From sequence record ON190024.1: a DNA stretch of 64,000 bases; one strand, given 5' to 3'. A program made the position numbers and the translations under genes. The first letter of the stretch is position 1. Every line of letters starts with the position of its first letter. Under the pieces are notes generated by a model that saw only the letters and a list, made by a program, of their open reading frames with translations, did no database searches and had not been told where the DNA came from. Positions 28,153 to 55,806 of this stretch are shown here, in pieces.

Positions 28153-28935
28153 ATGTTGAGAACAAATATTGCAATTGAAGAACTGAAAATCCGAATGCAT
28201 CCGTTCGATCAAGTTGCGAACGCAAACAACGACGATAGCTCAGTTCGCGACTGGCGCCAAATCCCTGACGTTGCTAATGACAATATCTTGAAGAACTCGG
28301 TTCTACCGTCGTGGGTAATTCGAGAGTTTCACTGGCGTGATATTTCATTCAATCAACCATCAATGAGTGATCTGCCCGTTGAGTACAAAACAGAAGCAGG
28401 TGAAATCGGTAAATGTCAATCGCATTATCTCGGTGAACTTGATAATTGCAAGTTCTGGCGCCCTGATATTGTATCTTTGAATGCTCAATTCATTGATTCA
28501 AAAGACGTTGATAAAGCACTTGCAGAATTGCAAGCCGTTGATGTGTTTGACGCTTCACAAGGATTCGCTGACGGTCGACCTGACCCGGTTAGTCACAATG
28601 AACACGGTATAACCGATGATGAGCTTGAAGCTGCAATCGTCGAAGCTGAAATGGCAGCGGCTGTAGATGCTTTAAAAGTTGAGTCGCAATCGTTGTTCGA
28701 TCCAGATCATGTTTATTACATGAATGAAAAGTATTATATTATCGGTGACGACCCGTTTGACGAAAATTACTGCTATGCGTTGAATGCTGCAAAATACCCA
28801 CAGCGTATTGCAAAATCTCAACTCGTAACCGATGAGCAATACAAAGAAGCTGAAGTTTTGAAGAGTCAGTTCCCACAGATGTGGACTGCTCAAGATTACG
28901 CAAAGCTTGCTAAGTTCATTCGCAGCAAAAAGTAG
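28153..28935 (+). CDS. hypothetical protein
   Basis: 260-aa ORF. Confidence 0.75.
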   Translation: MLRTNIAIEELKIRMHPFDQVANANNDDSSVRDWRQIPDVANDNILKNSVLPSWVIREFHWRDISFNQPSMSDLPVEYKTEAGEIGKCQSHYLGELDNCKFWRPDIVSLNAQFIDSKDVDKALAELQAVDVFDASQGFADGRPDPVSHNEHGITDDELEAAIVEAEMAAAVDALKVESQSLFDPDHVYYMNEKYYIIGDDPFDENYCYALNAAKYPQRIAKSQLVTDEQYKEAEVLKSQFPQMWTAQDYAKLAKFIRSKK

Positions 28936-28964: not shown

Positions 28965-28972
28965 CATAAATA
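28965..28972 (+). promoter_or_regulatory. T4-type late promoter
   Basis: CATAAATA, same as the element upstream of the tail-fibre gene (62447-62454, minus strand). Confidence 0.7.
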
Positions 28973-29004
28973 GTTCTATATGGACTAACAAGGAAATTAC
29001 GACA

Positions 29005-29535
29005 ATGCCAACTCCTACAACAGGTGCGATTTCAATCGGTACCGTTCGTGATTATTTCAGTAGAACCGGCGCTGCTTCATTGTCTCAGTACTACAGAGGC
29101 GGCGGTATTGTTCCTGATATTACTGAAAATGCTCACGTACCAACTTCAGGCGCGATTAGCTTGAATGACTTGCGCGGTGTATATCGCTTGTCAACGTATA
29201 CGACATCATTTACGACAACATACAACACCACTGTATCAACATCGAATACGACTTCGCGTAGTACATCAAGAAGTACAACTAGAAGTACTGCATACAGTAC
29301 AACTCGCTCGACTGCGTATACTACTAGTTGGACAACTAGCCGAACTACGTCGGTGGCGAAAGGATCGTATACGACCACATACGCAACTTCACGTGCTACA
29401 ACTCGTTCAACTGCGTATAACACGACACGTTCAACTGCTTATACGTCTACATGGACGACATCGTGGACAACGACGTACAACACAACAAGATCAACATCAA
29501 ACACAACTTCTCGAAGCACGCAAGTTGCAGTTTAA
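29005..29535 (+). CDS. Ser/Thr tetrad-repeat protein, putative virion fibre/adhesin
   Basis: AAGGA RBS; N-domain with two GAIS motifs; 26 X-[STNA]-T-[STA]-type tetrads. Confidence 0.8.
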   Translation: MPTPTTGAISIGTVRDYFSRTGAASLSQYYRGGGIVPDITENAHVPTSGAISLNDLRGVYRLSTYTTSFTTTYNTTVSTSNTTSRSTSRSTTRSTAYSTTRSTAYTTSWTTSRTTSVAKGSYTTTYATSRATTRSTAYNTTRSTAYTSTWTTSWTTTYNTTRSTSNTTSRSTQVAV

Positions 29536-29547
29536 CGAGGTTAAATT

Positions 29548-29766
29548 ATGAGCTACAATGAAGAACACGAGAATCGAATCAACGAGCTTGAGTCAAAGGT
29601 TGCAAGGCTTGAGTCGATAATTGAAAATCTGGTTGAGTCTATGACATCAAACAGCGAAGCTATTATCGAACACATTGCATCACTTGAGACCGAGAGAGAT
29701 TCGATTCTTGCATCATATGATGACAAACTTAATGAGATCGTGAACAAATATGAACCCAAGCAATAG
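29548..29766 (+). CDS. small acidic coiled-coil protein
   Basis: GAGG RBS, heptad pattern. Confidence 0.75.
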   Translation: MSYNEEHENRINELESKVARLESIIENLVESMTSNSEAIIEHIASLETERDSILASYDDKLNEIVNKYEPKQ

Positions 29767-30604
29767 AGAAATGACTGGGTTCAATAACATATCTCGCATT
29801 GGTAAGTTGAAATTACAATCCGATGCAGACAACGTCCGTGCCATGTGTATGGACGTTGTTCGTTTATTGAACTCCAAAAATATACCATCCAACTTCGACA
29901 TCAATCACAATGACGGTGGTAACATCGGCGTGCATGAGTGGGTGTCACAAATCCGCTTCATTCACTTGAAATACATGAACGTTAATTTTCAAACGAAGAT
30001 TTTCAAGCATGCCTATCACAACACTGAAAACGTCGTTGACTATTTTGACACGTTCAAACATTCTGATAAATATCATCTTTCGGCGAAGCCTCGATTCCTA
30101 GAATATGAAAACGTCGTATTTCTATGTGGATCGAATGTGCTTGAATTGGCAATTGACTTTGACAAGATTGATGCGTTAGTCGAACAATATCCTGATTTGG
30201 TGATTAAACCTCACCCGATTACGACGTTGTATTACATCAATATGCTTAAATCTAGATATGGTTCAAAGCGAATTCTATCCCAAAAGATCAGTGGTGTTGA
30301 TGTGCTTAAAGCTGCTAAACGTGTTTGGTTGCCTTCAACGTCTGAGTTCTGGTTTAGTGCCTTGAACTACGACAAAGAAATCGGGTTTATCTCTAAAGAT
30401 GGTTTCTGTGGAACGTACACGTCAATCATCAACGCAGTATGGGAATTGCATGAAGAAACCGGTGATCCATTGAAAGATATTGTGAATAAAATTATCTCGT
30501 CACCTTACTCAGGTCTGTATGGTAGTATGGCAGACTTTGAAGAGCATCACGAGAAATACTGTAATGTGATTCTAGAACTAGGGGGTAATTTCGATAATGT
30601 ATGA
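29750..30604 (+). CDS. GT-B glycosyltransferase-like protein (capsule biosynthesis KpsC/KpsS-like)
   Basis: LVIKPHP, then VWLPSTSEFWFSALNYDK resembling the S..G.EAL motif region; alternative start 29771. Confidence 0.6.
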   Translation: MNPSNREMTGFNNISRIGKLKLQSDADNVRAMCMDVVRLLNSKNIPSNFDINHNDGGNIGVHEWVSQIRFIHLKYMNVNFQTKIFKHAYHNTENVVDYFDTFKHSDKYHLSAKPRFLEYENVVFLCGSNVLELAIDFDKIDALVEQYPDLVIKPHPITTLYYINMLKSRYGSKRILSQKISGVDVLKAAKRVWLPSTSEFWFSALNYDKEIGFISKDGFCGTYTSIINAVWELHEETGDPLKDIVNKIISSPYSGLYGSMADFEEHHEKYCNVILELGGNFDNV

Positions 30605-31229
30605 TTATGTAATTCACACTTCGATTAGTGACAAAAGTCAGCTAAACCAACTAGTGATGTTTGTCGGGTCTTTCATCGAGACGCACAAAAAAGGTCGCGT
30701 GGTCTGCGTGACTGATCTTGAACTTGATTTCACGATGCCTCGACTGTCATTTGAGAAAAAACTACCCGAAGAGTACGTTTTCATTTCAGTTGACAATCTA
30801 TTTTTACAAAAAACATACGGCGTTGTTAGCTACATTGACAGTGGTACTTGGCGATGTACTTGGCAAAAGAATGATCATGATGATTTCGTCATTAAAAAGC
30901 ATGGCGAAAGAAGCGGGTTGATTCACCCTGATATTGCAATTGCAAATTACAATGTTTCGAGACATGGCGATCTCGACATGTATTACAACGCGCTTCGTTA
31001 CATTGAGAGCGCAATCACGATCAACTGCAAAGACTTTGCCCCTGCTGCTGAGAATAAAATCAACAGCTTTTACACGCTTGTATTTCCATGGGAGATTTAT
31101 TTTCACGTTATGATCACTTACCAAGAGTATATTGATTCTGAATACGTTGAGCGAGTTCGCGCTAACTGTCATAAGTTCGCACACTCGGTTTATTACAGAA
31201 AATCAGGGTTGTTACGTGATGGGTTATGA
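30597..31229 (+). CDS. hypothetical protein, possibly degenerate GT-A glycosyltransferase
   Basis: N-terminal beta-alpha-beta pattern ending VVCVTD, similar to GT8-type starts; weak. Confidence 0.4.
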   Translation: MYDYVIHTSISDKSQLNQLVMFVGSFIETHKKGRVVCVTDLELDFTMPRLSFEKKLPEEYVFISVDNLFLQKTYGVVSYIDSGTWRCTWQKNDHDDFVIKKHGERSGLIHPDIAIANYNVSRHGDLDMYYNALRYIESAITINCKDFAPAAENKINSFYTLVFPWEIYFHVMITYQEYIDSEYVERVRANCHKFAHSVYYRKSGLLRDGL

Positions 31230-31902
31230 TGAGATAATTTTAGTATCTGGTCTTGATAGTTTAGTTCTATATGAATTTCTTGAACGAAAGCCACACCCTG
31301 TTTACTTTAAATGGGGTTTTGCTATCGACGACATTGAAATGGCTGCTTTGCCTGAAGAAACAACTATCATAGAAATGCCAGAGATTTTGCATTTGAAACA
31401 TGATCCGTATGAGTTCAAGACACCAAGAAATCCCGATTTAATTGGTCGGAATACGTTGATGTTTAACTCAGTTTTCCATGCATTCAGACCAAACGTAATT
31501 TATCGCGGGATGTTGAAAGGTGATGATTTCTATTACGACGCATCGCCTACGCATTCAGATGAAATCGCAGCTATGTGGTCGAAAATGCTGAATAAAGAGT
31601 GTCGAATTGAACAACCGTTTAAAGACAAAACGAAACGTGACATAATGCAAATGGCGGTCGAATACGGTATTGATGCGAATTCATTACAGCATTGTTACAA
31701 TCGAGAACACAACTGCGGTCGATGTAGCAAGTGTGTGGATGCACATGTTAATTCTATGTACACCGACAACCCAGACATCATGTGGCTGAAACGAATAGTC
31801 AATGATTCGGGTATGTCATCAATGGCTAATCACATGTTTGGTGTTGATACAGTTGACAGAATAAAGGAATTTCTAGATGAATTTGATCGAACAGACTGCT
31901 GA
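31219..31902 (+). CDS. QueC-like PP-loop ATPase
   Basis: SGLDS, GRN, YYD, PFKDKTKRDI, CY...CGRCSKC Zn motif; 227 aa; PP-loop lacks one Gly. Confidence 0.75.
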   Translation: MGYDEIILVSGLDSLVLYEFLERKPHPVYFKWGFAIDDIEMAALPEETTIIEMPEILHLKHDPYEFKTPRNPDLIGRNTLMFNSVFHAFRPNVIYRGMLKGDDFYYDASPTHSDEIAAMWSKMLNKECRIEQPFKDKTKRDIMQMAVEYGIDANSLQHCYNREHNCGRCSKCVDAHVNSMYTDNPDIMWLKRIVNDSGMSSMANHMFGVDTVDRIKEFLDEFDRTDC

Positions 31903-32770
31903 TAAATTCGAGCATAGTTACCGAGAAGACGTTCAAGGCGTACAGTGGTATTTCGGTAGTCGAACGCATGATTTTTATCTGTATGGAATAGACTCTCTTA
32001 TTGATAAAGTCAAAGACTGTGATTTTATTGAAATCAAGCATGTTCAAGAGGGTACGCTGGTTAAACGAGGCGAAGCTGCGGTCACGGTTACGATTACAGA
32101 TCATAGTCGTATCGCATATGGGAACATGATTGAAACATTGTTGTACAATGAGTTGTGGTATTCGAGCACGGTCGGTACGATTTTACATCGTTGTCTTGAT
32201 GTGTTGCATGAAAACGGCTATGACGCTCGTTCAGCATACCCTCAAATCGGACGGGCGAGTTCAACGCCAGAACAGTCAGCTAAAGCAAGGGATGTGTTCG
32301 CACGTATATTTTATCAATCGTCGAATGAGAAAATACCCGTTGCGATGCACAGTGATATTTTAATCAACGGTGAGGAATATTGCATGGAACATTATAACGG
32401 CATTATGATTGATACTTTCGATAAGCAAGCTTGCATTGACTTGATCAACAAGAAAGACTTTCGAGGGACTGTGATGGTTGACTCTCAGCCAATAATTGAA
32501 ACAATTGAGAAAGTTCTAGCTGAAACAAAATGCTTTGTTGCACAAGCTGAAAGTGTTACACTCGATGAGTGGATAAAGATAGTGCGACATTTTAAAGGCA
32601 ATAAGCGAATTTTCTACGGGATTGGTAGCTTTGCATTTAGCAATATATCACGAGACACATTTGGTTTGATTTACAAAGTGTGTGCAGTTAAGAAAAACGA
32701 CAACTGGATCGGAGTTTCAAAGATGACGACAGGTAAACAAACATCGGCTGGTTATAAGGTTATAGGTTAG
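31877..32770 (+). CDS. compact NAMPT/NAPRT-like type II phosphoribosyltransferase
   Basis: aligns by eye to NAMPT at 35934 (EGT, ET....LWY..TV, IDTFD, DS, YGIG, RDT, KM...K...AG). Confidence 0.75.
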   Translation: MNLIEQTADKFEHSYREDVQGVQWYFGSRTHDFYLYGIDSLIDKVKDCDFIEIKHVQEGTLVKRGEAAVTVTITDHSRIAYGNMIETLLYNELWYSSTVGTILHRCLDVLHENGYDARSAYPQIGRASSTPEQSAKARDVFARIFYQSSNEKIPVAMHSDILINGEEYCMEHYNGIMIDTFDKQACIDLINKKDFRGTVMVDSQPIIETIEKVLAETKCFVAQAESVTLDEWIKIVRHFKGNKRIFYGIGSFAFSNISRDTFGLIYKVCAVKKNDNWIGVSKMTTGKQTSAGYKVIG

Positions 32771-32772
32771 TT

Positions 32773-33762
32773 ATGAATTATTGTATAGCGCCGTTTACAT
32801 CGCCGTCTATTACACCAGACGGTTTTAAAATTTGCAGCATGCCAGGTCAGAAAGTATACCCTGATATTTCATTCTGGAATAGTGATGAAGTGATCAAGAT
32901 TCGCGAACAGATTATCGCTGGTGAAATTCCTGAATCGTGCAAGGCATGTCGTAGTATGCGTGACGGGTTGATTGTGTCAAAAGAAAAACCAACTGATACT
33001 CATGTTGACTTGAATTTCAAAGCTCTTTACATTGCGCGGTCGAACAAGTGTGAATATGCTTGTGAAATGTGCAGTTCATCAATCTCACATAGCTATGACA
33101 AGAAATACAATGACGGTAAGTTGGGGATTATTGAGAATGACTTTGATGTTATTCCGTATCTGCACGAAACACAAGCCGTTGCTATTTCGGGCGGGAACCC
33201 TGTCATTGACAAAAAGGTTGCAGAGATTCTTGAGAATCTAGACCCTGACGTGGTAGAACGTTTCATTATTACTTCAAATGGGACAGTCTTTCCAGACAGA
33301 TTCTTGAATGCAATTAAGAGATTGAAATGTGACGCGACTTTGATATTCTCTATGGACGGACCGAAAGAGTTTAATGAAGTGGTTCGATCTGGTGCGAAGC
33401 AAGAGAGAATCTATCGCACCATTAATCGAGTTCTTGACGAGATTGAAGATTACCCAAACTTGCATGTGGCAATTGAGTATACTTTCACGAATAAGTCAAT
33501 TCATCACTACGTTGATTTGTATGATGAAATGCTCTTCGAGATCAACCCGAAGCATTTGAAAAACAACTCAGTTAAAGTGATTGCGAATATGTGTACATAC
33601 CCGCATCACCTTAGCGTTACAACTGTTCCCAAAACCGTCATTGATGACATATTGTTCAATCAGTTGCCATATTTGAGACAGCAACCCAGCCCATTGTCAA
33701 ATCAATTCAAACTTGGCTATGATAAGTTTTTGACTCAGTATCACAACAGCGTGATTATGTGA
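32773..33762 (+). CDS. radical SAM protein with N-terminal twitch domain
   Basis: C.APF...C...WNS...IRE...CKAC then CEYACEMC, GGNP, SMDG. Confidence 0.85.
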   Translation: MNYCIAPFTSPSITPDGFKICSMPGQKVYPDISFWNSDEVIKIREQIIAGEIPESCKACRSMRDGLIVSKEKPTDTHVDLNFKALYIARSNKCEYACEMCSSSISHSYDKKYNDGKLGIIENDFDVIPYLHETQAVAISGGNPVIDKKVAEILENLDPDVVERFIITSNGTVFPDRFLNAIKRLKCDATLIFSMDGPKEFNEVVRSGAKQERIYRTINRVLDEIEDYPNLHVAIEYTFTNKSIHHYVDLYDEMLFEINPKHLKNNSVKVIANMCTYPHHLSVTTVPKTVIDDILFNQLPYLRQQPSPLSNQFKLGYDKFLTQYHNSVIM

Positions 33763-34879
33763 TCAGATCATACGCTTTGATATGTGAGTAAAACTCTGGA
33801 CACGCAGACGATAAATTAGTTTTCGTCTTCGTGTCTATTCTTTTGTTAAGAACAAAGAATTCAGGGTTGAATTTACAAACACTGTGTTCCAGAGTAAGAC
33901 ATTCAGCAACGTGCTTAAATGGTCTAGCCAAATCCTCACGCCCATCTTTTAAATACGCTTCTTCTTTCACTTTGAATCTTGATAATAGCTGGTCTCGAAA
34001 TGCAACTGGAATGTTGTAAATTGAGTATGGATTATCAGGCTCACCGACGACATGCACAGACAAACGTACACGTTTACCATCATAAAGCGAATCAAAATCT
34101 GAAACCAATGTTTCAAGATGTTCAAGAGTCACGTTTGACACGGTCGCAGTGATAACTACATCAAAGTGTTGCTTGATGACTTCAATGTTTGATTTGACTT
34201 TTTTGATGTCTGCAAACAATCGAATATAATCTTGGTATTCTCGTAGACCGTCGATTGATACGAACACCGTTGATGCATTAGCTTCTTTAAGCGATTTGAT
34301 GAGATCTGAGCCATCGGCTAACACTAGTGATGAGCCATTCGTGAAAATATTCACTGCGGCTTTAATGTCGCCTACGTTGCGAAGAACTTCAGGAGCATTT
34401 GACGAGCGGGTAATTTCACCGCCTAGAATTGTCAATGACGAAAGTCCTTTGCTGATTGTGTTGATTGTCGTACTCAAATCATTGAATCGAGTACTTGAAT
34501 CTTCTTCATTGAACAATCTAGCTTTCAAGTCTGATAATTTGCTGTAGCAGTAACGACAAGCTTGGTTACATTCATTACTAGGGAATACTTGTAGCCAGCG
34601 AACTGAATCAGCGGGCATAATAGGTGAAACTTCAGAATCGTGTTCTGTTAGACGCTGTGGGTCATTATCAGTGATGCACATTTGACATGCCTTTGACAGC
34701 TTGCTCATGTCGTGGTTTAGCATTGCTTCACGATAAGCGACAAGCTTTTCATCATTCCAAGCGTCTGCTAGTGTTTTTTCATCAGTAAACCATTCATAAT
34801 CAGCCGAACAGCAAAACGTAATTTGATTGTTTGCTCGTGTGATGAACTGCTTGAACGGCATATAACATAGTGGTTTCAT
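33755..34879 (-). CDS. radical SAM protein with N-terminal twitch domain
   Basis: CYMPF...CC...WN...YRE...CQMC then CNQACRYC, GGE, SIDG. Confidence 0.85.
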   Translation of the reverse strand: MKPLCYMPFKQFITRANNQITFCCSADYEWFTDEKTLADAWNDEKLVAYREAMLNHDMSKLSKACQMCITDNDPQRLTEHDSEVSPIMPADSVRWLQVFPSNECNQACRYCYSKLSDLKARLFNEEDSSTRFNDLSTTINTISKGLSSLTILGGEITRSSNAPEVLRNVGDIKAAVNIFTNGSSLVLADGSDLIKSLKEANASTVFVSIDGLREYQDYIRLFADIKKVKSNIEVIKQHFDVVITATVSNVTLEHLETLVSDFDSLYDGKRVRLSVHVVGEPDNPYSIYNIPVAFRDQLLSRFKVKEEAYLKDGREDLARPFKHVAECLTLEHSVCKFNPEFFVLNKRIDTKTKTNLSSACPEFYSHIKAYDLIT

Positions 34880-34889
34880 GTTTCTGTCC

Positions 34890-35462
34890 TTAGTTAAAAA
34901 TGCTACTTGTATATATAGCAGTCTTCAGAGCATTGAAATGATCGTCAACTCTATTCACGTGTATGCATTCAATGTCAAATTTTTCTTGGATTTCTCGGAT
35001 GTTGTCTAGCGAGTCGTCGATGAAGTATTTCACCTCATGCAGTTCACACAGCTTCTCAACATATTTTGCCTTCGAGTCGAAGTACTCAATCGAAATCACC
35101 TCACTTATCATCCCTGGGAATAACGCATTTAGATTATGCACGCGATTTGACCATGAAGTTCTACTCATGCTGAACTTGGTTAGTGCAATGATGTTATACC
35201 GGTCTGAGAGTTCGCGTAACGCATCGTAAGCGTCTTCATATGCGGGTATGTACTTTGCACACTCATGTTCATTGTATGCACCTATAAGCTTGCCTAGCTG
35301 CATGTCACTCACGTTAATAAATAAAGAGCGTGCATCGGTATCAGTATTTGAACCGTTGATATTCAAATTATCAAGCATGCCTAATTGCATCATGAAGAAT
35401 GGCAAGTTGGCTTTCCAGTTAAGCAAAACCCCGTCTACATCTATGATGATCGTCTTTTTCAT
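34890..35462 (-). CDS. HAD-family phosphatase (5'(3')-nucleotidase-like)
   Basis: IIIDVDGVL, FIDDS. Confidence 0.85.
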   Translation of the reverse strand: MKKTIIIDVDGVLLNWKANLPFFMMQLGMLDNLNINGSNTDTDARSLFINVSDMQLGKLIGAYNEHECAKYIPAYEDAYDALRELSDRYNIIALTKFSMSRTSWSNRVHNLNALFPGMISEVISIEYFDSKAKYVEKLCELHEVKYFIDDSLDNIREIQEKFDIECIHVNRVDDHFNALKTAIYTSSIFN

Positions 35463-41163: not shown

Positions 41164-42216
41164 TCATTTCACCATTTTGATTTGAATCTGATTGTCCATG
41201 TAAGCCATTTTCTTTTCAAATTCAACATCATATTCTGGTCGATGTTCGTATTCGACTGAAAGCATTTGCTTCAGACAACGGTACAATTCCGACTTGTAAT
41301 ACCCTTCTTTCATTCCCTTCATCTGTTCATATTGCTTTTTCATAGCAGCTTTGATTATCTTCGGGTCCATGAATTTGATTGACATTTCTCGCGGTGCTTT
41401 TACTGTGCCAAAGTCAACAAACACCTGAGCCTTTTCAGCTACTTGAATGAAGTCATAAATCGTGTCATAACTCATTCGACTTAGCGTGTGGTGCATACAA
41501 ACATGTTTGCTATGTTCTTTTAGCAACGGTACATTTGCAAGCATCAAGTCGTGGTCGATGTTCTGACGAATGTATTCGTTGCGCTCTTTTCCGCCGTCAC
41601 ATGAAATTGTAAACACTAGACGATGTTTGTACTTTTTACATATGGCTAGAATCTTCTTCGCAAGTGGCGTATGCAACACAGTACCATTTGTCAGAATGTA
41701 AACTTCCGCATTTGTTTCTTCCATGACTTCAGTCAGAACTTCGACTGTTCTCTTGTCCATGAACGGTTCGCCGCCGTATAGCACAACAGTTTCAACACCC
41801 TTCGGGATACTGAAATCGAGTTGTGTGTAATCGTAATGGTCGTCAATGTCATACAAGTCCATGTATGTTTTGCTATTCTTGCCATAGCACATTCGACACG
41901 CTAGGTTACATTTGTTTGACATCAATATTTGAATTGTTCTAGGATGCTCTTCGAGTGCTTCATATTCGAAGTACTTCTGATCAGACAATTCGCCATAACT
42001 CATACATTCTTTGCAGTATTCTGGTAAAGTGTCATACTCAAACATTTTGGCACGATGTTCATTGATGATGTCACTGTGCCACCAGTCTTCAACGTTCGGG
42101 AATGGTTCACTTAGCTGAGAACAGCAAATGTGATACCCATCAGGTTTTGCGTCACGTGTATTAAAGGGAGAGCCACAAAGTGGTCTCTTCCCGTCTTTAA
42201 ATCCGAATTTATCCAT
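41164..42216 (-). CDS. radical SAM protein with N-terminal twitch domain
   Basis: CGSPF...CC...WW...HR...CKEC then CNLACRMC, YGGEPF, TNG, SCDG. Confidence 0.88.
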   Translation of the reverse strand: MDKFGFKDGKRPLCGSPFNTRDAKPDGYHICCSQLSEPFPNVEDWWHSDIINEHRAKMFEYDTLPEYCKECMSYGELSDQKYFEYEALEEHPRTIQILMSNKCNLACRMCYGKNSKTYMDLYDIDDHYDYTQLDFSIPKGVETVVLYGGEPFMDKRTVEVLTEVMEETNAEVYILTNGTVLHTPLAKKILAICKKYKHRLVFTISCDGGKERNEYIRQNIDHDLMLANVPLLKEHSKHVCMHHTLSRMSYDTIYDFIQVAEKAQVFVDFGTVKAPREMSIKFMDPKIIKAAMKKQYEQMKGMKEGYYKSELYRCLKQMLSVEYEHRPEYDVEFEKKMAYMDNQIQIKMVK

Positions 42217-42488
42217 TAATCTAGCTCATCAAGAAGTGATTGAAATTCCTCGTCGCGTTCAGCGTCGATTGTACCAGTCATCAACTCTGTTAGAGTCTTC
42301 AACGACTTGATCTCTGGTGGTTGAGGGCGTAGATCTTCGAGAATGTGAATGATTGACTCGGCTGGGAGGTCGTGATTTACGATCTCATCTGGCAGGTGGT
42401 GTTTGTAAACGCAGTCGTCGCCCCAATCAATAACTACTGCATGTTCCCATTTGTCGATTTCTAGTATTTTAAAATTTGGTTTCATCAT
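42216..42488 (-). CDS. small acidic hypothetical protein
   Basis: ATGA-coupled to the glycosyltransferase gene. Confidence 0.7.
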   Translation of the reverse strand: MMKPNFKILEIDKWEHAVVIDWGDDCVYKHHLPDEIVNHDLPAESIIHILEDLRPQPPEIKSLKTLTELMTGTIDAERDEEFQSLLDELD

Positions 42489-43486
42489 AAGCCCCAGAGT
42501 TCTTTCCAATGTGTTTTAGCATCTTGTCGATACTTCTCAATGTCAAATTTTTGATATTTCTGTTCGATTGCATCATCAATGACGCGAATCAACGTATCAT
42601 TGTTTATATCAGCACGAATCACTGGGAAAATAAAATCCCGTGTGTAAGGTGCATCATGCTGAACAATACAAGGTATGTACTGACATGCTTCTAATAACGC
42701 ATATGGCATAATCTCGATTCGTGACATGTGAAGCAAAACTTTACTTTTCATCATATGTGCTATGACTCGCTCACGCCGTTGACAAGTTTCGACTATACAA
42801 TCAACCCCATTCGGGATTCTTATTGATTCGGTTGTGAATAGACGAATTTTAAGACCGCTGTATGCAAGCGCGTTTAGCATTTCGGGTATCTGCTTACGTT
42901 TGTATGCACCTGACACGATAATCACGTCAGACGCTTCAGCAGCGTCAATATCAGCTTGTGATATAGACGGAAGCTCAAATGGTTCAAATGCAGTCACATG
43001 TTTGCCACCGATTACTTCTCGACCCCATTGTGCAATCCCGTTCGATTGAGCAATGTTAGTGACTAATGACGTTGACATCATGTGTCGCCATTGAGGTAAG
43101 TTGTAAATTTGATGAATGTCCATGTATTCGCGATATGAATCTGGTACTATCAAGTCACCGAAATGATGTTGGTTGTAACAACGGCGCTTCGCTTCGATAC
43201 ATGCGCGGAGTGCTTCATATGAATGCGTATAGATAATCGCTTCGCTATCAATCGCGTTGATAACCATTGCGTTTGCCTTGTAGTCTTTATAAGACCGTTT
43301 CGTTAAAATGAAGTCACACCCGAAATCCCATTTACTCACGTGTGGACACGATTCGTCTCCGAGTACAATAACTTTGACATCACAGTTTAGTGATTGCATT
43401 AAACGAACGTGATCTTGAATGAATGTGTAAATACCGCCGCCAATCCCTAACATAAAGTCAGTTACTACGTAGCGAACTTTTTTCAT
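42485..43486 (-). CDS. GT-B (GT4-like) glycosyltransferase
   Basis: GIGGGI N-terminal motif, KRKQ, SRIEIMPYALLEAC (E-x7-E). Confidence 0.8.
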   Translation of the reverse strand: MKKVRYVVTDFMLGIGGGIYTFIQDHVRLMQSLNCDVKVIVLGDESCPHVSKWDFGCDFILTKRSYKDYKANAMVINAIDSEAIIYTHSYEALRACIEAKRRCYNQHHFGDLIVPDSYREYMDIHQIYNLPQWRHMMSTSLVTNIAQSNGIAQWGREVIGGKHVTAFEPFELPSISQADIDAAEASDVIIVSGAYKRKQIPEMLNALAYSGLKIRLFTTESIRIPNGVDCIVETCQRRERVIAHMMKSKVLLHMSRIEIMPYALLEACQYIPCIVQHDAPYTRDFIFPVIRADINNDTLIRVIDDAIEQKYQKFDIEKYRQDAKTHWKELWGL

Positions 43487-46512: not shown

Positions 46513-46560
46513 AGTCTCGCGTGTATAAATAATAACAATATTATACAAACACGCGAGACT
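46513..46560 (+). promoter_or_regulatory. RBS-sequestering hairpin with embedded late promoter
   Basis: 12-bp inverted repeat AGTCTCGCGTGT/ACACGCGAGACT; TATAAATA at 46524-46531. Confidence 0.85.
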
Positions 46561-46564
46561 ACCG

Positions 46565-47410
46565 ATGAACTACTCGAAAATATACGATGATTTGATGGAA
46601 AGAGCACGCTACCGAACAATTGATGGATATAGTGAAACACATCATATAATCCCGCGCTGCATGAATGGCGATGACTCAGCTTCAAACTTGGTTAAACTCA
46701 CTGCACGCGAGCATTATATCGCACATCAATTGCTTGCTAAAATACACCCAGAACACGCAGGGTTAGTTTTTGCTGCGATTCGCATGACAATGAGTCCTAG
46801 CGGGGATCGTGTCAATAATAGACTTTATTCATGGCTGAGAGAGAAAAATTCTGAGCATTCAAGTGAAAGAATGCGTGAATGGTATAAAAATAATGAACAC
46901 CCAAAGGGGTTCAATGGGAAGAGTCATTCAAGTGAAACCAAATCACTCATTTCGAAAAATACAACAAACGCATTGAGAGAAAAAATTGCAGTTGAGGTTC
47001 ACATGTTTGACATGAACGGAAAATACATCCGCACATTCGATGCATTGACAGACGCTGCAAATTTCGTAGGGGCTTCTAATGCATCAAACATAAAGTACAC
47101 CGCTGAAGGAAAGCACCAATATGCTTATGGGTATAGGTGGTCGTATGACCTCGACGCAAGTTTTGACGATATAAAGGCGCCCAGAGGGAAAAACAACGGG
47201 AAAATGTATATCACAAACGGCGTTGATAATAAAATGATCACGAAAGATGATGTAATCCCATCAGGGTGGCGTCGTGGGAAAACTCAGAAGAATAAGTCTG
47301 ATTCGTCGGCAATGAATCAACTCGCAACGTGTCCTCATTGCGGAAAACAAACGAACAAGGGTAATGCATTACGTTGGCATTATGATAATTGTAAGGAAAA
47401 ACATGTCTAA
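46565..47410 (+). mobile_element. free-standing HNH homing endonuclease (MobE-like position)
   Basis: ETHHIIPRC...NLVKLTAREHYIAH, NUMOD-like segments, CPHCGK...C; lies between nrdA and nrdB. Confidence 0.88.
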
Positions 47411-52346: not shown

Positions 52347-53228
52347 ATGCAGGTAAGATGGACAGAAATGTTTTACAGCATTCAAGGCGAAGGGAAATAC
52401 ACTGGTCAAGCTAGTTTATTCTTTCGCTTCTGGGGTTGTAACTTAGAATGTCACGGCTTCGGGCAAGAAGATCCGACGAATAAAGATACATGGGTATTAG
52501 ACTTCAAAGACTACGACCCGAAAGCGAACAACGTGACTTCAGTCGAAGATCTGCCTGTATGGACTCGTGGATGTGACTCTTCTTACACGTGGGCTAAAAA
52601 GTATGCTCATCTTGCTTCAAAGTCTGAAGTCGCAGATGTATGCGAAGCAATGCTTGAGAAACTGCCTAATCGAGTTTGGGGAGATATTCATTGGGTAATT
52701 ACAGGTGGTGAGCCGATGATGAATCAAGCTCAAATCATCGAAATGATGAATTACTTCATCAAAATTGACAATTATCCAAAACATGTCACGATTGAAACTA
52801 ATGGTACGCGAGAACTCAAGCCAGAATTTGCAGAGCGTTGGGCGCTAATTCAGTGGAATACGCATAGTAATGTTCACTTGAGTTTCAGCGTATCAGCTAA
52901 GTTGTACAACGTAACTGGCGAAGTGCATGAAAAAGCAATCAAGCCAAAAGTTGTCAACAAGTATGCACGCATCGGAGAAGTCTGGCTCAAGCCAGTCGTC
53001 GTAGACAAGGAAGCGTGTTGGGACGAGCTTGATGCTGTGATCGCACAGTTCAAAGCAGAACGCAACTTACACAACGTTCCAGTGTATATCATGCCATGTG
53101 GTGCTACTCAAGAAGAGCAAGAACAAGATGGTTATATGGCGTCAATCGCAGGGAAAGCATTGGCGCGTGGTTACAACGTTTCTGTACGAACTCACGTATG
53201 GATTTGGGGTAACGCGGTGGGCACGTAA
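52347..53228 (+). CDS. queE: 7-carboxy-7-deazaguanine synthase (radical SAM)
   Basis: EMFYSIQGEG, F.RFWGCNLEC..F ... CDS, ITGGEP, IETNGT. Confidence 0.9.
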   Translation: MQVRWTEMFYSIQGEGKYTGQASLFFRFWGCNLECHGFGQEDPTNKDTWVLDFKDYDPKANNVTSVEDLPVWTRGCDSSYTWAKKYAHLASKSEVADVCEAMLEKLPNRVWGDIHWVITGGEPMMNQAQIIEMMNYFIKIDNYPKHVTIETNGTRELKPEFAERWALIQWNTHSNVHLSFSVSAKLYNVTGEVHEKAIKPKVVNKYARIGEVWLKPVVVDKEACWDELDAVIAQFKAERNLHNVPVYIMPCGATQEEQEQDGYMASIAGKALARGYNVSVRTHVWIWGNAVGT

Positions 53229-54658: not shown

Positions 54659-54666
54659 CATAAATA
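54659..54666 (+). promoter_or_regulatory. T4-type late promoter
   Basis: CATAAATA. Confidence 0.7.
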
Positions 54667-54687
54667 CAAATAAAATGTGAGGATGCA

Positions 54688-55806
54688 ATGAAAAATCTAA
54701 AATCTTTTATGGAAGAACTTCAATCATTGAACGAAGTCTTCATTCGTGGCGGTCGACCACGAAACGGGTCTAAGGTTCTTGCGAACGGCAAGAATATTTG
54801 GGTGTGGAATAACGATAGAGAGTTCGAACGTCTAGCGCCATTTATCAATCGTGAACTCGGAACCGACTTTGAAGAAGAGTACGATCTAGACTCTTGGTAC
54901 GAAGAGGGCGCACAAGCGGTATACGCGACGATTGAAAACGGCAAGCTAGATATGCAAGGGCAATCATCTTATCGCCCGTCTGTAGCGTCTGACACGCTTC
55001 GCAAGACTATTAAAGCCCTTAACCTGAACGGCGTGACTCGTCGAACGCAATCATTTAACCCTGATTACGATGAAGTTGAGCACGATTTCGAGACCGACCG
55101 TCGAGAATTCAACAAGAAACTGTCTCAGAAGACGTTCTATCACGGTACATCGACTACGTTCATCGAATCAATGTTGAAATTTGGTCTGAAACCGAATCCG
55201 AATGAAACGCAATTCGATAATATTGAACATGCTGATAAAGTCTTTATTACAACAGAACTTGACAAAGCAATGTTCCACGCGACACACTCAGCGAACCGAA
55301 ACAACTCGTTCCCTGTGATTATCGAGCTACGCATTCCAGACGAAAGCAAGCTTGTATCTGACTATGACGTTGTAATTGATGTTCTAGGCGCTAATTCGGA
55401 AGAAGCATCCGAGCTTGGGTATGCTGACATCTTCTATCAAATGCCACATTCGCGTGGTGACGGTACTAAGTATCACAGAGACGACATCGAAAGTCGATTT
55501 GGTAAACGCCTAGGCGGATTGAGTACTCGCATCGGTATCTTCGGGTACAAAGGTCGAATCCCTGCAAGTCATTTCAATTTCATCTACGCTGACGGTGACG
55601 TGATCGAAGAATCAATGCCAGAAATGTATTGGGAAATGGACGGCGAATTCGACATGGCAGAAATGCGTACTGAATCAGTCAACCACCGTTCGTTCGACTA
55701 CTGGGATCAATTCAAACCCACTAAATTCATTGCTCACTTCGAAGAACTTTGGGATGATCTCAAAGATGAATACGAAGACGAGGAAGAAGACGAAGATTGG
55801 GACTAA
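54688..55806 (+). CDS. ADP-ribosyltransferase-fold protein (KptA/Tpt1-like motifs), putative head-packaged
   Basis: FYHGTS...MLKFGLKP, VFITT...A..HA, VIIELRI; N-terminus MKNLKSFMEE. Confidence 0.65.
   Translation: MKNLKSFMEELQSLNEVFIRGGRPRNGSKVLANGKNIWVWNNDREFERLAPFINRELGTDFEEEYDLDSWYEEGAQAVYATIENGKLDMQGQSSYRPSVASDTLRKTIKALNLNGVTRRTQSFNPDYDEVEHDFETDRREFNKKLSQKTFYHGTSTTFIESMLKFGLKPNPNETQFDNIEHADKVFITTELDKAMFHATHSANRNNSFPVIIELRIPDESKLVSDYDVVIDVLGANSEEASELGYADIFYQMPHSRGDGTKYHRDDIESRFGKRLGGLSTRIGIFGYKGRIPASHFNFIYADGDVIEESMPEMYWEMDGEFDMAEMRTESVNHRSFDYWDQFKPTKFIAHFEELWDDLKDEYEDEEEDEDWD

Follow-up and report, generated by a model that had tools for sequence, protein, structure and literature searches.

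The stretch of DNA studied here (the window, 64,000 nucleotides of record ON190024.1) corresponds to nt 1-64000 of Vibrio phage PVA8 with 100% identity, PVA8 being a KVP40-like phage of the T4 type. Its positions 28965-35462 hold a 6.5-kb cassette of nine open reading frames (ORFs) across 29005-35462, seven on the + strand and two on the − strand, whose KVP40 counterparts are KVP40.0254-0262 (98.5% identity). The cassette combines a Thr/Ser-rich repeat protein with a set of putative enzymes, and it is probably a new protein-tailoring system, as far as gene sequences can tell. The features are as follows.

28965-28972, + strand: late-promoter-like motif CATAAATA, 33 nt before the ATG of the repeat-protein gene
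29005-29535, + strand: repeat protein, 176 aa, phrog_30374, with a conserved N-terminal domain (N-domain) and a C-terminal Thr/Ser tetrad-repeat region
29548-29766, + strand: coiled-coil protein, 72 aa, with weak coiled-coil family matches only, kept in six of the six lineages compared below
29750-30604, + strand: glycosyltransferase (GT)-like protein, 284 aa, with an HP motif; putative sialyl-/Kdo-transferase type, weakly supported
30597-31229, + strand: 210-aa protein of unassigned family, found in 35 phage records, which are also those of the QueC-like and phosphoribosyltransferase (PRTase) genes
31219-31902, + strand: QueC-family PP-loop ATPase, 227 aa, minimal and Cap9-like (PDB, PADLOC and AlphaFold2 (AF2)/Foldseek matches)
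31877-32770, + strand: truncated NAMPT/NAPRTase-like PRTase, 297 aa (PF04095, phrog_448, alignment with NadV)
32773-33762, + strand: radical S-adenosylmethionine enzyme rSAM1, 329 aa, with an N-terminal Cys-rich twitch-like domain; a conserved partner
33755-34879, − strand: rSAM2, 374 aa, N-twitch-like; variable, truncated in D484 and none detected in D479 and L013
34890-35462, − strand: HAD-type protein, 190 aa, T4 30.2-like, with a weak Pfam match and phrog_420

The seven + strand genes form the tightly coupled run that had been described in a sequence-only reading of the window, the junctions ranging from a 26 nt overlap to a 12 nt gap (in order, a gap of 12 nt, overlaps of 17, 8, 11-14 and 26 nt, and a gap of 2 nt). 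The second rSAM gene and the HAD gene converge on this run from the − strand, as was also stated there, with an 8-nt overlap at 33755-33762. The setting is a plastic genome region, a long series of small + strand genes with NadV, nrdAB, topoisomerase and asiA at its end; at 59-64 kb of the window, on the − strand, are the long tail fibre genes. No Rfam family was found between 27 and 38 kb of the window.

The protein encoded first is indeed a Ser/Thr tetrad-repeat protein, as the sequence-only reading had it. Its N-domain (approximately residues 1-62) is non-repetitive and consists of two 'SGxISxxxx' half-repeats flanking a YYRGG.VP core, and the C-terminal 114 aa contain 62% Ser+Thr, no acidic residues and almost no aliphatic ones. 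Pairs of R, Y, W or K residues in the repeat region are found 19 times at lag 4 and 17 times at lag 8, against 0-1 elsewhere (z = 8.4). This is a periodicity of the protein rather than a trace of recent slippage, since TRF finds only weak 12-nt repeats in the DNA of the gene. The repeat region varies from 106 to 305 aa across lineages with the tetrad kept in all of them, and the protein starts with Met-Pro in every Vibrio-phage lineage. Two ORFs inside the repeat gene, 29133-29423 (−) and 29165-29551 (+), were rejected as composition artefacts. The gene is unannotated in the deposits of D484, D479 and F86, where spurious short ORFs have been called in other frames or on the opposite strand, yet it is an intact ORF in each (L004:4409-4942 in D484, L005:5110-5622 in D479 and L006:4347-4904 in F86).

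The distribution of the cassette was searched over 50,697 phage records. The 210-aa, QueC-like and PRTase genes were each found in 35 records, all of them Vibrio T4-type phages, and the GT-like gene in 35 Vibrio records plus nine from Caulobacter and one from Stenotrophomonas. The N-domain of the repeat protein was found in 35 Vibrio T4-type records, the search total being 37 Vibrio records, of which at least two are weak matches in other phage types. Word-based protein searches returned close relatives only, and a pattern scan of IMG/VR returned KVP40 only. Comparison of synteny in six lineages (PVA8/KVP40, QD01/VS1, D484/6E35.1a, D479, F86 and the metagenomic contig L013) gave one common order in all six, namely repeat protein, coiled coil, GT-like, 210-aa, QueC-like and PRTase genes, at 31-79% protein identity. 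The rSAM1 gene usually follows next after the PRTase gene and is found just upstream of the repeat gene in D479, and the opposite strand has a HAD gene nearby. D484, F86 and L013 have additions that are absent from PVA8, namely a 2-oxoglutarate (2OG)-oxygenase-like gene, called by reading a His-x-Asp...His motif and having no family match, a 307-aa protein without assignment and a nucleotidyltransferase-kinase fusion.

The gene upstream of the cassette (28153-28935) is present in 49 Vibrio phage records, exceeding by 14 the number with the cassette, and the slot between it and NadV has other contents in some phages. In VH7D the slot (L027:9812-10913) holds a 177-aa globular N-domain protein and a PagP-like gene, and in nt-1 (L028:9789-10997) a single 402-aa FG-GAP repeat protein with an N-domain; none of the cassette enzymes was found in either slot. 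The N-domains of the two replacement proteins match that of the repeat protein with E values of 4e-6 and 5e-6 in local hmmsearch and 2.6e-5 in blastp, and the VH7D replacement gene is preceded by a perfect late consensus. Since both replacements share the N-domain, the slot appears always to encode a predicted late N-domain protein, and it acts as an exchange point for members of a single late-protein family. The Thr/Ser tetrad version is accompanied by all the enzymes and the other versions (VH7D and nt-1) by none. The limits of the exchanged segment match 28965-35462, and the best explanation for this interval is one exchangeable cassette.

The N-domain is also found in phages of Xanthomonas, Stenotrophomonas, Ralstonia, Burkholderia and Pseudomonas, in small proteins encoded directly after tail-fibre genes. 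Members of this family have two or three 'SGxISxxxx' half-repeats and C-terminal parts that are either globular or rich in Gly, Ser or Ala. Such an arrangement suggests a modular family with a conserved anchor and exchangeable tips, and judging by gene position its members would be virion proteins. In the Stenotrophomonas phage DLP_6 (L007 1-7569) two 2OG-Fe(II) oxygenase genes bracket an N-domain protein and a long tail fibre gene, and in D484, F86, D479 and L013 a 2OG-oxygenase-like protein, read from the motif and having no family hit, is encoded near the cassette. Such 2OG oxygenase genes near N-domain proteins hint at hydroxylation of fibre-associated proteins.

The late-type promoter motif that had been noticed before the first gene is present, and the kind of motif is kept in relatives. 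The T4 late consensus is an 8-mer whose first base is variable in KVP40-like phages (PMC1524935). The motif CATAAATA occurs 3 times in the window against 2.9 expected by chance, and all five sites of the form [TC]ATAAATA in the window lie 20-45 nt 5' of the start of a same-strand ORF, one of them in the intergenic gap directly after a long-tail-fibre gene and another in front of a homing endonuclease gene. At the orthologous position, QD01 has an identical 8-mer, D484 and F86 have C/T-CTAAATA and the metagenomic relative L013 has a perfect late consensus; no clear late-type motif was seen at this position in D479. Because the late-type motif is kept in relatives and there is no intergenic terminator between the + strand genes of the cassette, late co-transcription of the repeat gene and the downstream enzymes is plausible. 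A terminator-like hairpin at 29828-29860 was considered as an operon boundary and rejected, as it lies inside the GT-like ORF. This 14-bp perfect hairpin, about 80 nt into that ORF, is kept in QD01 (−23.7 kcal/mol for a 70-nt segment) and not in the more distant lineages; it could lower the amount of enzyme mRNA relative to the two upstream genes, or be incidental.

Among the enzymes, the QueC-like protein has a single sequence match in the PDB, 9nto_B, which is Cap9 (E 1e-5, full length), and the PADLOC profile for the QueC of the cyclic-oligonucleotide-based antiphage signalling system (CBASS-QueC, Cap9, PDLC00911) matches residues 6-176 to profile positions 9-182 of 190 (E 2.3e-13), while the Pfam and TIGR QueC models cover just the C-terminal half of the protein. 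The AF2 model has a mean predicted local distance difference test (pLDDT) score of 91 and gives Foldseek matches to 2pg3 (QueC, 2e-7), 9nto_B (4e-7) and 3bl5 (2e-5), with a TMt of 0.69 and a root mean square deviation of 3.5 against Cap9. With a full-length match to profile or structure and a minimal core of about 185 aa as the mark of Cap9, the claim of a QueC-like ATPase stands and can be narrowed, the protein being closer to the protein-modifying Cap9 than to biosynthetic QueC. The PP-loop SGGxDS is present as S-G-L/I-D-S, with S10, G11, D13 and S14 invariant in five lineages and 37 homologues, as are the four Cys of the zinc motif (C159, C166, C169 and C172). The Arg-Asn/Asp loop, the Tyr of YxD and a PFx4K motif are kept, whereas no lineage retains the Gln of Y/FxQ or the Cys of YxDC, both being replaced throughout. 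The substrate motifs of canonical preQ0 synthase QueC are YxQxHxxE and YPDC (PMC13329287); the cassette protein has W-G-F...E and Y-x-D/E-A/S at these positions, so that the canonical motifs are not kept, and it scores 28.7 bits with TIGR00364 (preQ0 synthase), for which the cut-off is 150. The replacement of the Gln and the Cys suggests that the substrate would be a carboxylate other than carboxy-deazaguanine. An exhaustive phmmer search of 1.84 billion representatives gave five relatives only with E below 1e-10. FolE, QueD or QueE genes were found beside members of this clade in none of eight contexts, while the next-nearest QueC homologues (P0013, P0014 and P0018) adjoin genes for GTP cyclohydrolase I (FolE), QueD and QueE, which is the ordinary deazaguanine layout. 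Neither a CD-NTase nor a Cap10 resembling tRNA-guanine transglycosylase (TGT) was found in the cassette or related loci. Cap9 and QatC are reported to join a base to the N-terminus of a protein (PMC13329287).

In the metagenomic contig L013, QueC-like and rSAM1 sequences are fused into one 558-aa protein (P0008), with 47% identity to the QueC-like protein and 61% to rSAM1, and this fusion is strong evidence that the two act in one pathway. The earlier assignment of two N-twitch rSAM enzymes can be kept in part. The family model NF033640 is the best match for both, and both have the CxxxCxxC motif, an N-terminal Cys cluster and PF04055 above its cut-off, but the NF033640 scores (118.6 bits for rSAM1 and 127.9 for rSAM2) are below the curated 170. 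rSAM2 was rejected as a core cassette member, being variable among lineages. No function for the N-twitch rSAM family was found in our literature search. A third N-twitch-like rSAM gene (350 aa, NF033640 134.6 bits) lies at 41164-42216 (−), together with genes for 90-aa and 333-aa proteins without assignment (41164-43486); it was rejected as part of the cassette, as nt-1 keeps an rSAM gene there without the cassette.

The PRTase is compact, as had been claimed, with 297 aa against 497 aa for the NadV of the window, and it matches PF04095 with 28.2 bits (cut-off 20.8) and phrog_448 with E 9e-37. The N-terminal domain of the full NAMPT architecture (about 470-500 aa) is missing. In the alignment with NadV, GxGS and RDT of the ribose-phosphate loop, the EHS His, the DS motif and an acidic residue are all retained, whereas the segments that bind nicotinamide or nicotinate in NadV (which we take, from what is known of NAMPT, to carry the aromatic clamp and the Asp that reads the amide) are missing or changed. 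The PRTase has the look of an active enzyme that uses phosphoribosyl pyrophosphate (PRPP) with a new acceptor. Among 5.8 billion proteins, five clusters of the PRTase came up in a word-based search.

The remaining cassette proteins are less well defined. The GT-like family gives Pfam matches to GT52 (5e-4), Capsule_synth (KpsC/KpsS, 6e-3) and polysialyltransferase (0.26), and its 'IKPHPxT' HP motif is conserved, with KPHP invariant in ten of ten homologues. The call of a KpsC/KpsS-like GT is tentatively retained as far as the matches consistently point to one related group and the HP motif is invariant, and is weakened in that all the matches are below the Pfam cut-offs. Neither the protein nor its family profile has a credible sequence match in the PDB. 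The 210-aa protein, taken earlier for a possible GT-A, had no Pfam, NCBIfam or PDB match in single or profile searches and no invariant DxD in six homologues, and the GT-A assignment was rejected. The 72-aa coiled coil is possibly an assembly helper. The putative HAD phosphatase belongs to phrog_420 (annotated as T4 30.2-like) and has an N-terminal D-V-D-G motif; the D479-type orthologue was listed with PF18143 (HAD_SAK_2), and the match to PF00702 is weak (19 bits, cut-off 26.4). Every lineage has the HAD gene close to the cassette, and the VH7D and nt-1 slots are without it.

Parts of the cassette recur beside structural genes of other phages. In the T7-like Caulobacter phage Lullwater, the tail fibre gene gp40 is followed by gp41, a GT-like homologue (gp42) and a holin gene; gp41 has 215 aa with 40% Ser+Thr, and its Thr-Thr pairs number 34 at lag 4 versus 2-13 elsewhere (z = 7.2). 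In the Caulobacter phage Cr30 a Thr/Tyr-rich protein of 116 aa precedes the GT-like homologue, the two lying between fibre-like giants and neck genes; no significant tetrad was found in this 116-aa protein. The context of the GT-like gene in DLP_6 was rejected as a recurrence, as it has no tetrad protein. The second sub-module, the pair of QueC-like and PRTase genes, is found on two contigs. In L016, an SU10-like podophage contig, the two genes are adjacent (35% and 36% identity) and lie between a gene for a 670-aa tail-repeat protein and further structural genes, and three genes downstream of the pair a 289-aa Gly-rich protein is encoded whose N-terminus shares 52% identity with the N-domain of nt-1 (E 2e-8). 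Directly after the latter is an apparent truncated QueC-like paralogue of 151 aa (L016:12130-12585) that has a PP-loop-like start and no zinc motif; it has one weak cross-match, to the QueC-like protein of L018 (blastp 1.3e-5, 24% identity). In L018, a siphovirus-like contig, the order is two S74 tail fibres, an 86-aa ORF, a 266-aa Gly-rich protein, a QueC-like protein whose start overlaps the preceding stop, a 251-aa rSAM of another type, a 404-aa NAMPT-like PRTase and lysis genes. Homology of the N-domain to the Gly-rich protein of L018 was rejected (E 0.28-0.7).

From these observations we propose, at a probability of about 0.45, that the cassette enzymes tailor the repeat protein, which would be a late, fibre-associated protein. 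This is also the core of the sequence-only reading, in which the enzymes decorate the hydroxyl-rich protein encoded first; it is partly supported, gaining from the synteny in six lineages, the presence/absence pattern, the QueC-rSAM fusion, the recurrence of two sub-modules beside tail-fibre genes and the likeness to Cap9, and the call of a possible GT-A enzyme has to be given up. In the proposed mechanism, the protein would consist of a widespread N-terminal 'anchor' domain, joined in other phages to quite different C-terminal domains, and of the Thr/Ser tetrad region, which would present dozens of hydroxyls on a regular scaffold, to which the HP-motif transferase would add an activated acidic sugar of the CMP-sugar type (O-glycosylation). 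The Cap9-like QueC ATPase would adenylate a carboxylated heterocycle and ligate it to an amine, in the way that Cap9 acts on a protein N-terminus, the compact NAMPT-like enzyme would use PRPP to add ribose-5-phosphate to the heterocycle, and the fused or adjacent radical SAM enzyme would make or remodel the heterocycle. Each of these specific chemical steps, which follow from family chemistry, is less likely than the general tailoring claim. The fullest version, a nucleobase- or nucleotide-type adduct built on a virion protein by Cap9-like ligation of a pyridine- or deazapurine-type heterocycle, its phosphoribosylation in place and O-glycosylation of the tetrads, we consider improbable. The virion location, the late co-transcription and the target residue of the tailoring are likewise what we infer from gene arrangement and sequence.

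Several observations weigh against this tailoring of the repeat protein. The presence/absence pattern may reflect just one or two evolutionary events, the + strand genes of the cassette are on the same strand as the early genes, and our literature search turned up neither a virion proteome nor a transcriptome of KVP40. The N-domain family mostly occurs without the cassette enzymes, and the Met-Pro start of the repeat protein is not the Gly of the Cap9 and QatC targets. The layout resembles that of ribosomally synthesised and post-translationally modified peptides, with a conserved N-domain, a variable repeat and an adjacent rSAM, yet the N-domain is widespread without a maturase and no cleavage site is evident. 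The GT assignment consists of sub-threshold matches only and the AF2 model of this protein, from a three-sequence alignment, has a pLDDT of 33 and is unusable for the fold; the minus-strand rSAM2 is not conserved across lineages, and the HAD gene has a T4 homologue (30.2), though it co-travels with the cassette. The Gly-rich protein of L018 has only a motif-level likeness to the N-domain that is not significant, unrelated cargo genes frequently land between tail fibres and lysis genes, and the QueC-like and PRTase pair occurs without the GT or a tetrad protein in two other phages. Finally, the neighbourhood is rich in NAD metabolism, with NadV adjoining, a NADAR gene in L013 and NMNAT/Nudix genes near the cassette in D479. 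In L013 the NADAR-domain gene and an acyl-carrier (PP-binding) gene lie two to four genes from the cassette HAD gene (L013:16262-17579).

The last two points also speak for small-molecule nucleotide metabolism, in which the PRTase, QueC-like, rSAM and HAD proteins would be responsible for the synthesis or salvage of a free nucleotide of the pyridine or deazapurine kind, with the repeat protein a mere neighbour; examples are a route from nicotinate via nicotinate mononucleotide to nicotinamide mononucleotide that feeds the NadV/NatV NAD+ pathway, or a toyocamycin-type nucleoside analogue. NadV lies about 470 nt past the cassette, with NADAR and NMNAT/Nudix genes close in relatives, and the KVP40 NadV/NatV counteract NAD+ depletion (bioRxiv 10.1101/2024.02.11.579819). 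The PRTase keeps the PRPP-side residues and the catalytic His, but not the positions that hold nicotinamide in NadV. The PP-loop superfamily includes enzymes that act on pyridine mononucleotide carboxylates (LarE) and catalyse NH3-dependent amidations (PMC13329287), and this explanation leaves unexplained that the nearest relative of the QueC-like protein is the protein-ligating Cap9. The set of QueC, rSAM, PRTase and HAD proteins parallels deazapurine nucleoside clusters. Such a pathway does not explain the joint gain and loss of the repeat protein, coiled coil, GT-like and 210-aa genes with the enzymes, nor the place of the pair in the tail-fibre modules of two small phages, and we hold it to be unlikely, though it is the main rival. 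NARP3 was considered as a related pathway and rejected, as it consists of PnuC and NadR.

The transferase and its partners could instead alter the host lipopolysaccharide (LPS) or capsule late in infection, for instance to block superinfection or to release progeny from debris, rather than a phage protein. The HP-motif relatives (GT52, KpsC/S and polysialyltransferase) normally build LPS or capsule, QD01 has an extra GT9 heptosyltransferase-like gene nearby, the VH7D slot contains the PagP-like lipid A gene, and the nucleotidyltransferase-kinase fusion of D484, F86 and L013 is typical of sugar or choline activation. This has no role for the QueC-like protein and the PRTase, leaves the constant pairing with a tetrad protein unexplained, that in the T7-like Caulobacter phage included, and meets with no signal peptide or membrane anchor evident in the enzyme translations, which were read by eye with no topology or signal-peptide predictor run; we think it very unlikely. 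Even less probable is that the enzymes build a modified base for phage DNA or RNA, the hypermodification alternative raised in the sequence-only reading, which has lost ground with the finding that the QueC-like clade is never accompanied by FolE or QueD (none of the eight contexts) and the neighbouring QueC clades are. QueC homologues with an rSAM are typical of phage 7-deazaguanine DNA modification and a QueE-like rSAM is encoded 20 kb away (52347-53228), but the cassette has no transglycosylase-like gene, the QueC-like and PRTase pair is found in structural modules elsewhere, and a late promoter is ill-suited to the supply of bases at the time of replication. The least credible of the alternatives is counter-defence mimicry, by which the Cap9-like enzyme and the PRTase would intercept the carboxy-deazaguanine of type IV CBASS or Qat, or mis-modify their proteins. 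The full-length match of the QueC-like protein to the CBASS QueC (Cap9) profile is in line with this, as is the habit of phages to carry homologues of defence parts; the base-pocket residues differ from those of Cap9, with the Gln and Cys replaced in all lineages, late expression would be badly timed, and the GT, 210-aa and repeat proteins would be without a role. The rival explanations account for the co-inheritance of the whole cassette with the repeat protein less well than the tailoring model does.

Three further observations concern other parts of the window. The QueE-like gene (52347-53228, + strand) encodes a 293-aa radical SAM protein of which the first approximately 36 residues match QueE models; it is encoded far from the QueC-like gene, and the scanned ORFs of the window included neither FolE nor QueD. 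At 54659-55806 (+) a protein with a weak PARP-catalytic-domain match (PF00644, E 1e-4) is encoded, with CATAAATA upstream, possibly a late ADP-ribosyltransferase. The homing endonuclease gene at 46524-47410 lies between nrdA and nrdB, with a perfect late consensus 33 nt upstream; some T4 homing endonucleases are known to have late promoters.

KVP40 has been a reference phage since 2003, and no paper on these nine KVP40 genes was found in our literature search, which did not cover the 2003 genome paper. If the tailoring model is correct, phages tailor a dedicated surface protein with chemistry that goes far past simple glycosylation, for which they would employ a ligase of the QueC type, known elsewhere from bacterial immunity, a NAMPT-type enzyme whose acceptor is new, and an rSAM family for which our literature search gave no results. 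It would give the first functional footholds for the orphan families N-twitch rSAM, compact PRTase and phrog_30374, would define a modular fibre-associated family that combines a single N-terminal anchor with interchangeable tips (Thr/Ser tetrad, Gly-rich, FG-GAP and globular), and would mean that nucleobase-protein conjugation is not limited to defence systems. A nucleotide adduct, if real, would be the first base- or nucleotide-protein conjugation in a virus particle and a phage-side counterpart of type IV CBASS/Qat chemistry. Should small-molecule metabolism prove right instead, the QueC-like protein and compact PRTase would form a new two-enzyme nucleotide pathway in phages.

The cassette can be compared to several known systems. 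With Cap9/Cap10 of type IV CBASS, where Cap9 ligates carboxy-deazaguanine to the N-terminal amine of a protein (protein deazaguanylation), and with QatC/QatB it shares a minimal PP-loop ATPase of QueC fold with the four-Cys zinc motif, the RN loop and the YxD motif, and with Cap9/Cap10 also a paired second enzyme of base-ribose glycosyl-transfer chemistry (the TGT-like Cap10 there, the NAMPT-like PRTase here). It differs in being phage-encoded and outside a defence island, in having no CD-NTase, Cap10/TGT, QatA, QatB or QatD partner, in the replaced pocket Gln and Cys, in a candidate target that starts with Met-Pro and not with Gly, and in a partner enzyme of another family. The NadV/NatV NAD+ salvage of KVP40 (NARP2) involves another NAMPT-family PRTase of this phage, encoded close by, whereas the cassette PRTase, at 297 aa, lacks the N-terminal domain and the nicotinamide positions and travels with the QueC-like gene, not with NMNAT. 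Toyocamycin/sangivamycin-type clusters and phage 7-deazaguanine DNA modification clusters likewise combine a QueC homologue, an rSAM, a PRTase and a HAD phosphatase; unlike them, the cassette is without FolE and QueD, its PRTase is of the type II (NAMPT) class, its rSAM is N-twitch-like and not QueE, and its context is late or structural.

On the side of the candidate target protein, virion glycosylation in mycobacteriophages is comparable, where phage-encoded glycosyltransferases act on capsid and tail-tube proteins; there as here, transferase genes adjoin those of structural proteins (putative in the cassette) with hydroxyl-rich segments, on which the mycobacteriophage enzymes also act. These are ordinary GT-A or GT-B enzymes on major capsid and tail proteins, whereas the candidate here is a dedicated small repeat protein accompanied by QueC-like, PRTase and rSAM enzymes. 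Serine-rich repeat adhesins and O-glycosylated flagellins are also hydroxyl-rich repetitive surface proteins encoded with dedicated transferases, and flagellin O-glycosylation uses CMP-activated acidic nine-carbon sugars, the donor class that the HP motif suggests for the cassette. They are bacterial and linked to secretion, without enzymes of the nucleotide type, and the strict Thr-x-(Arg/Tyr/Trp)-x tetrad of the cassette protein is not seen in their repeats. The adhesin gp38 and chaperone gp57A of T4 follow a similar logic, a small protein whose gene comes after the fibre genes, with a conserved attachment end and a variable low-complexity end beside a small coiled coil; no sequence similarity to them was found, and the KVP40-type repeat gene lies 30 kb from the fibre genes.

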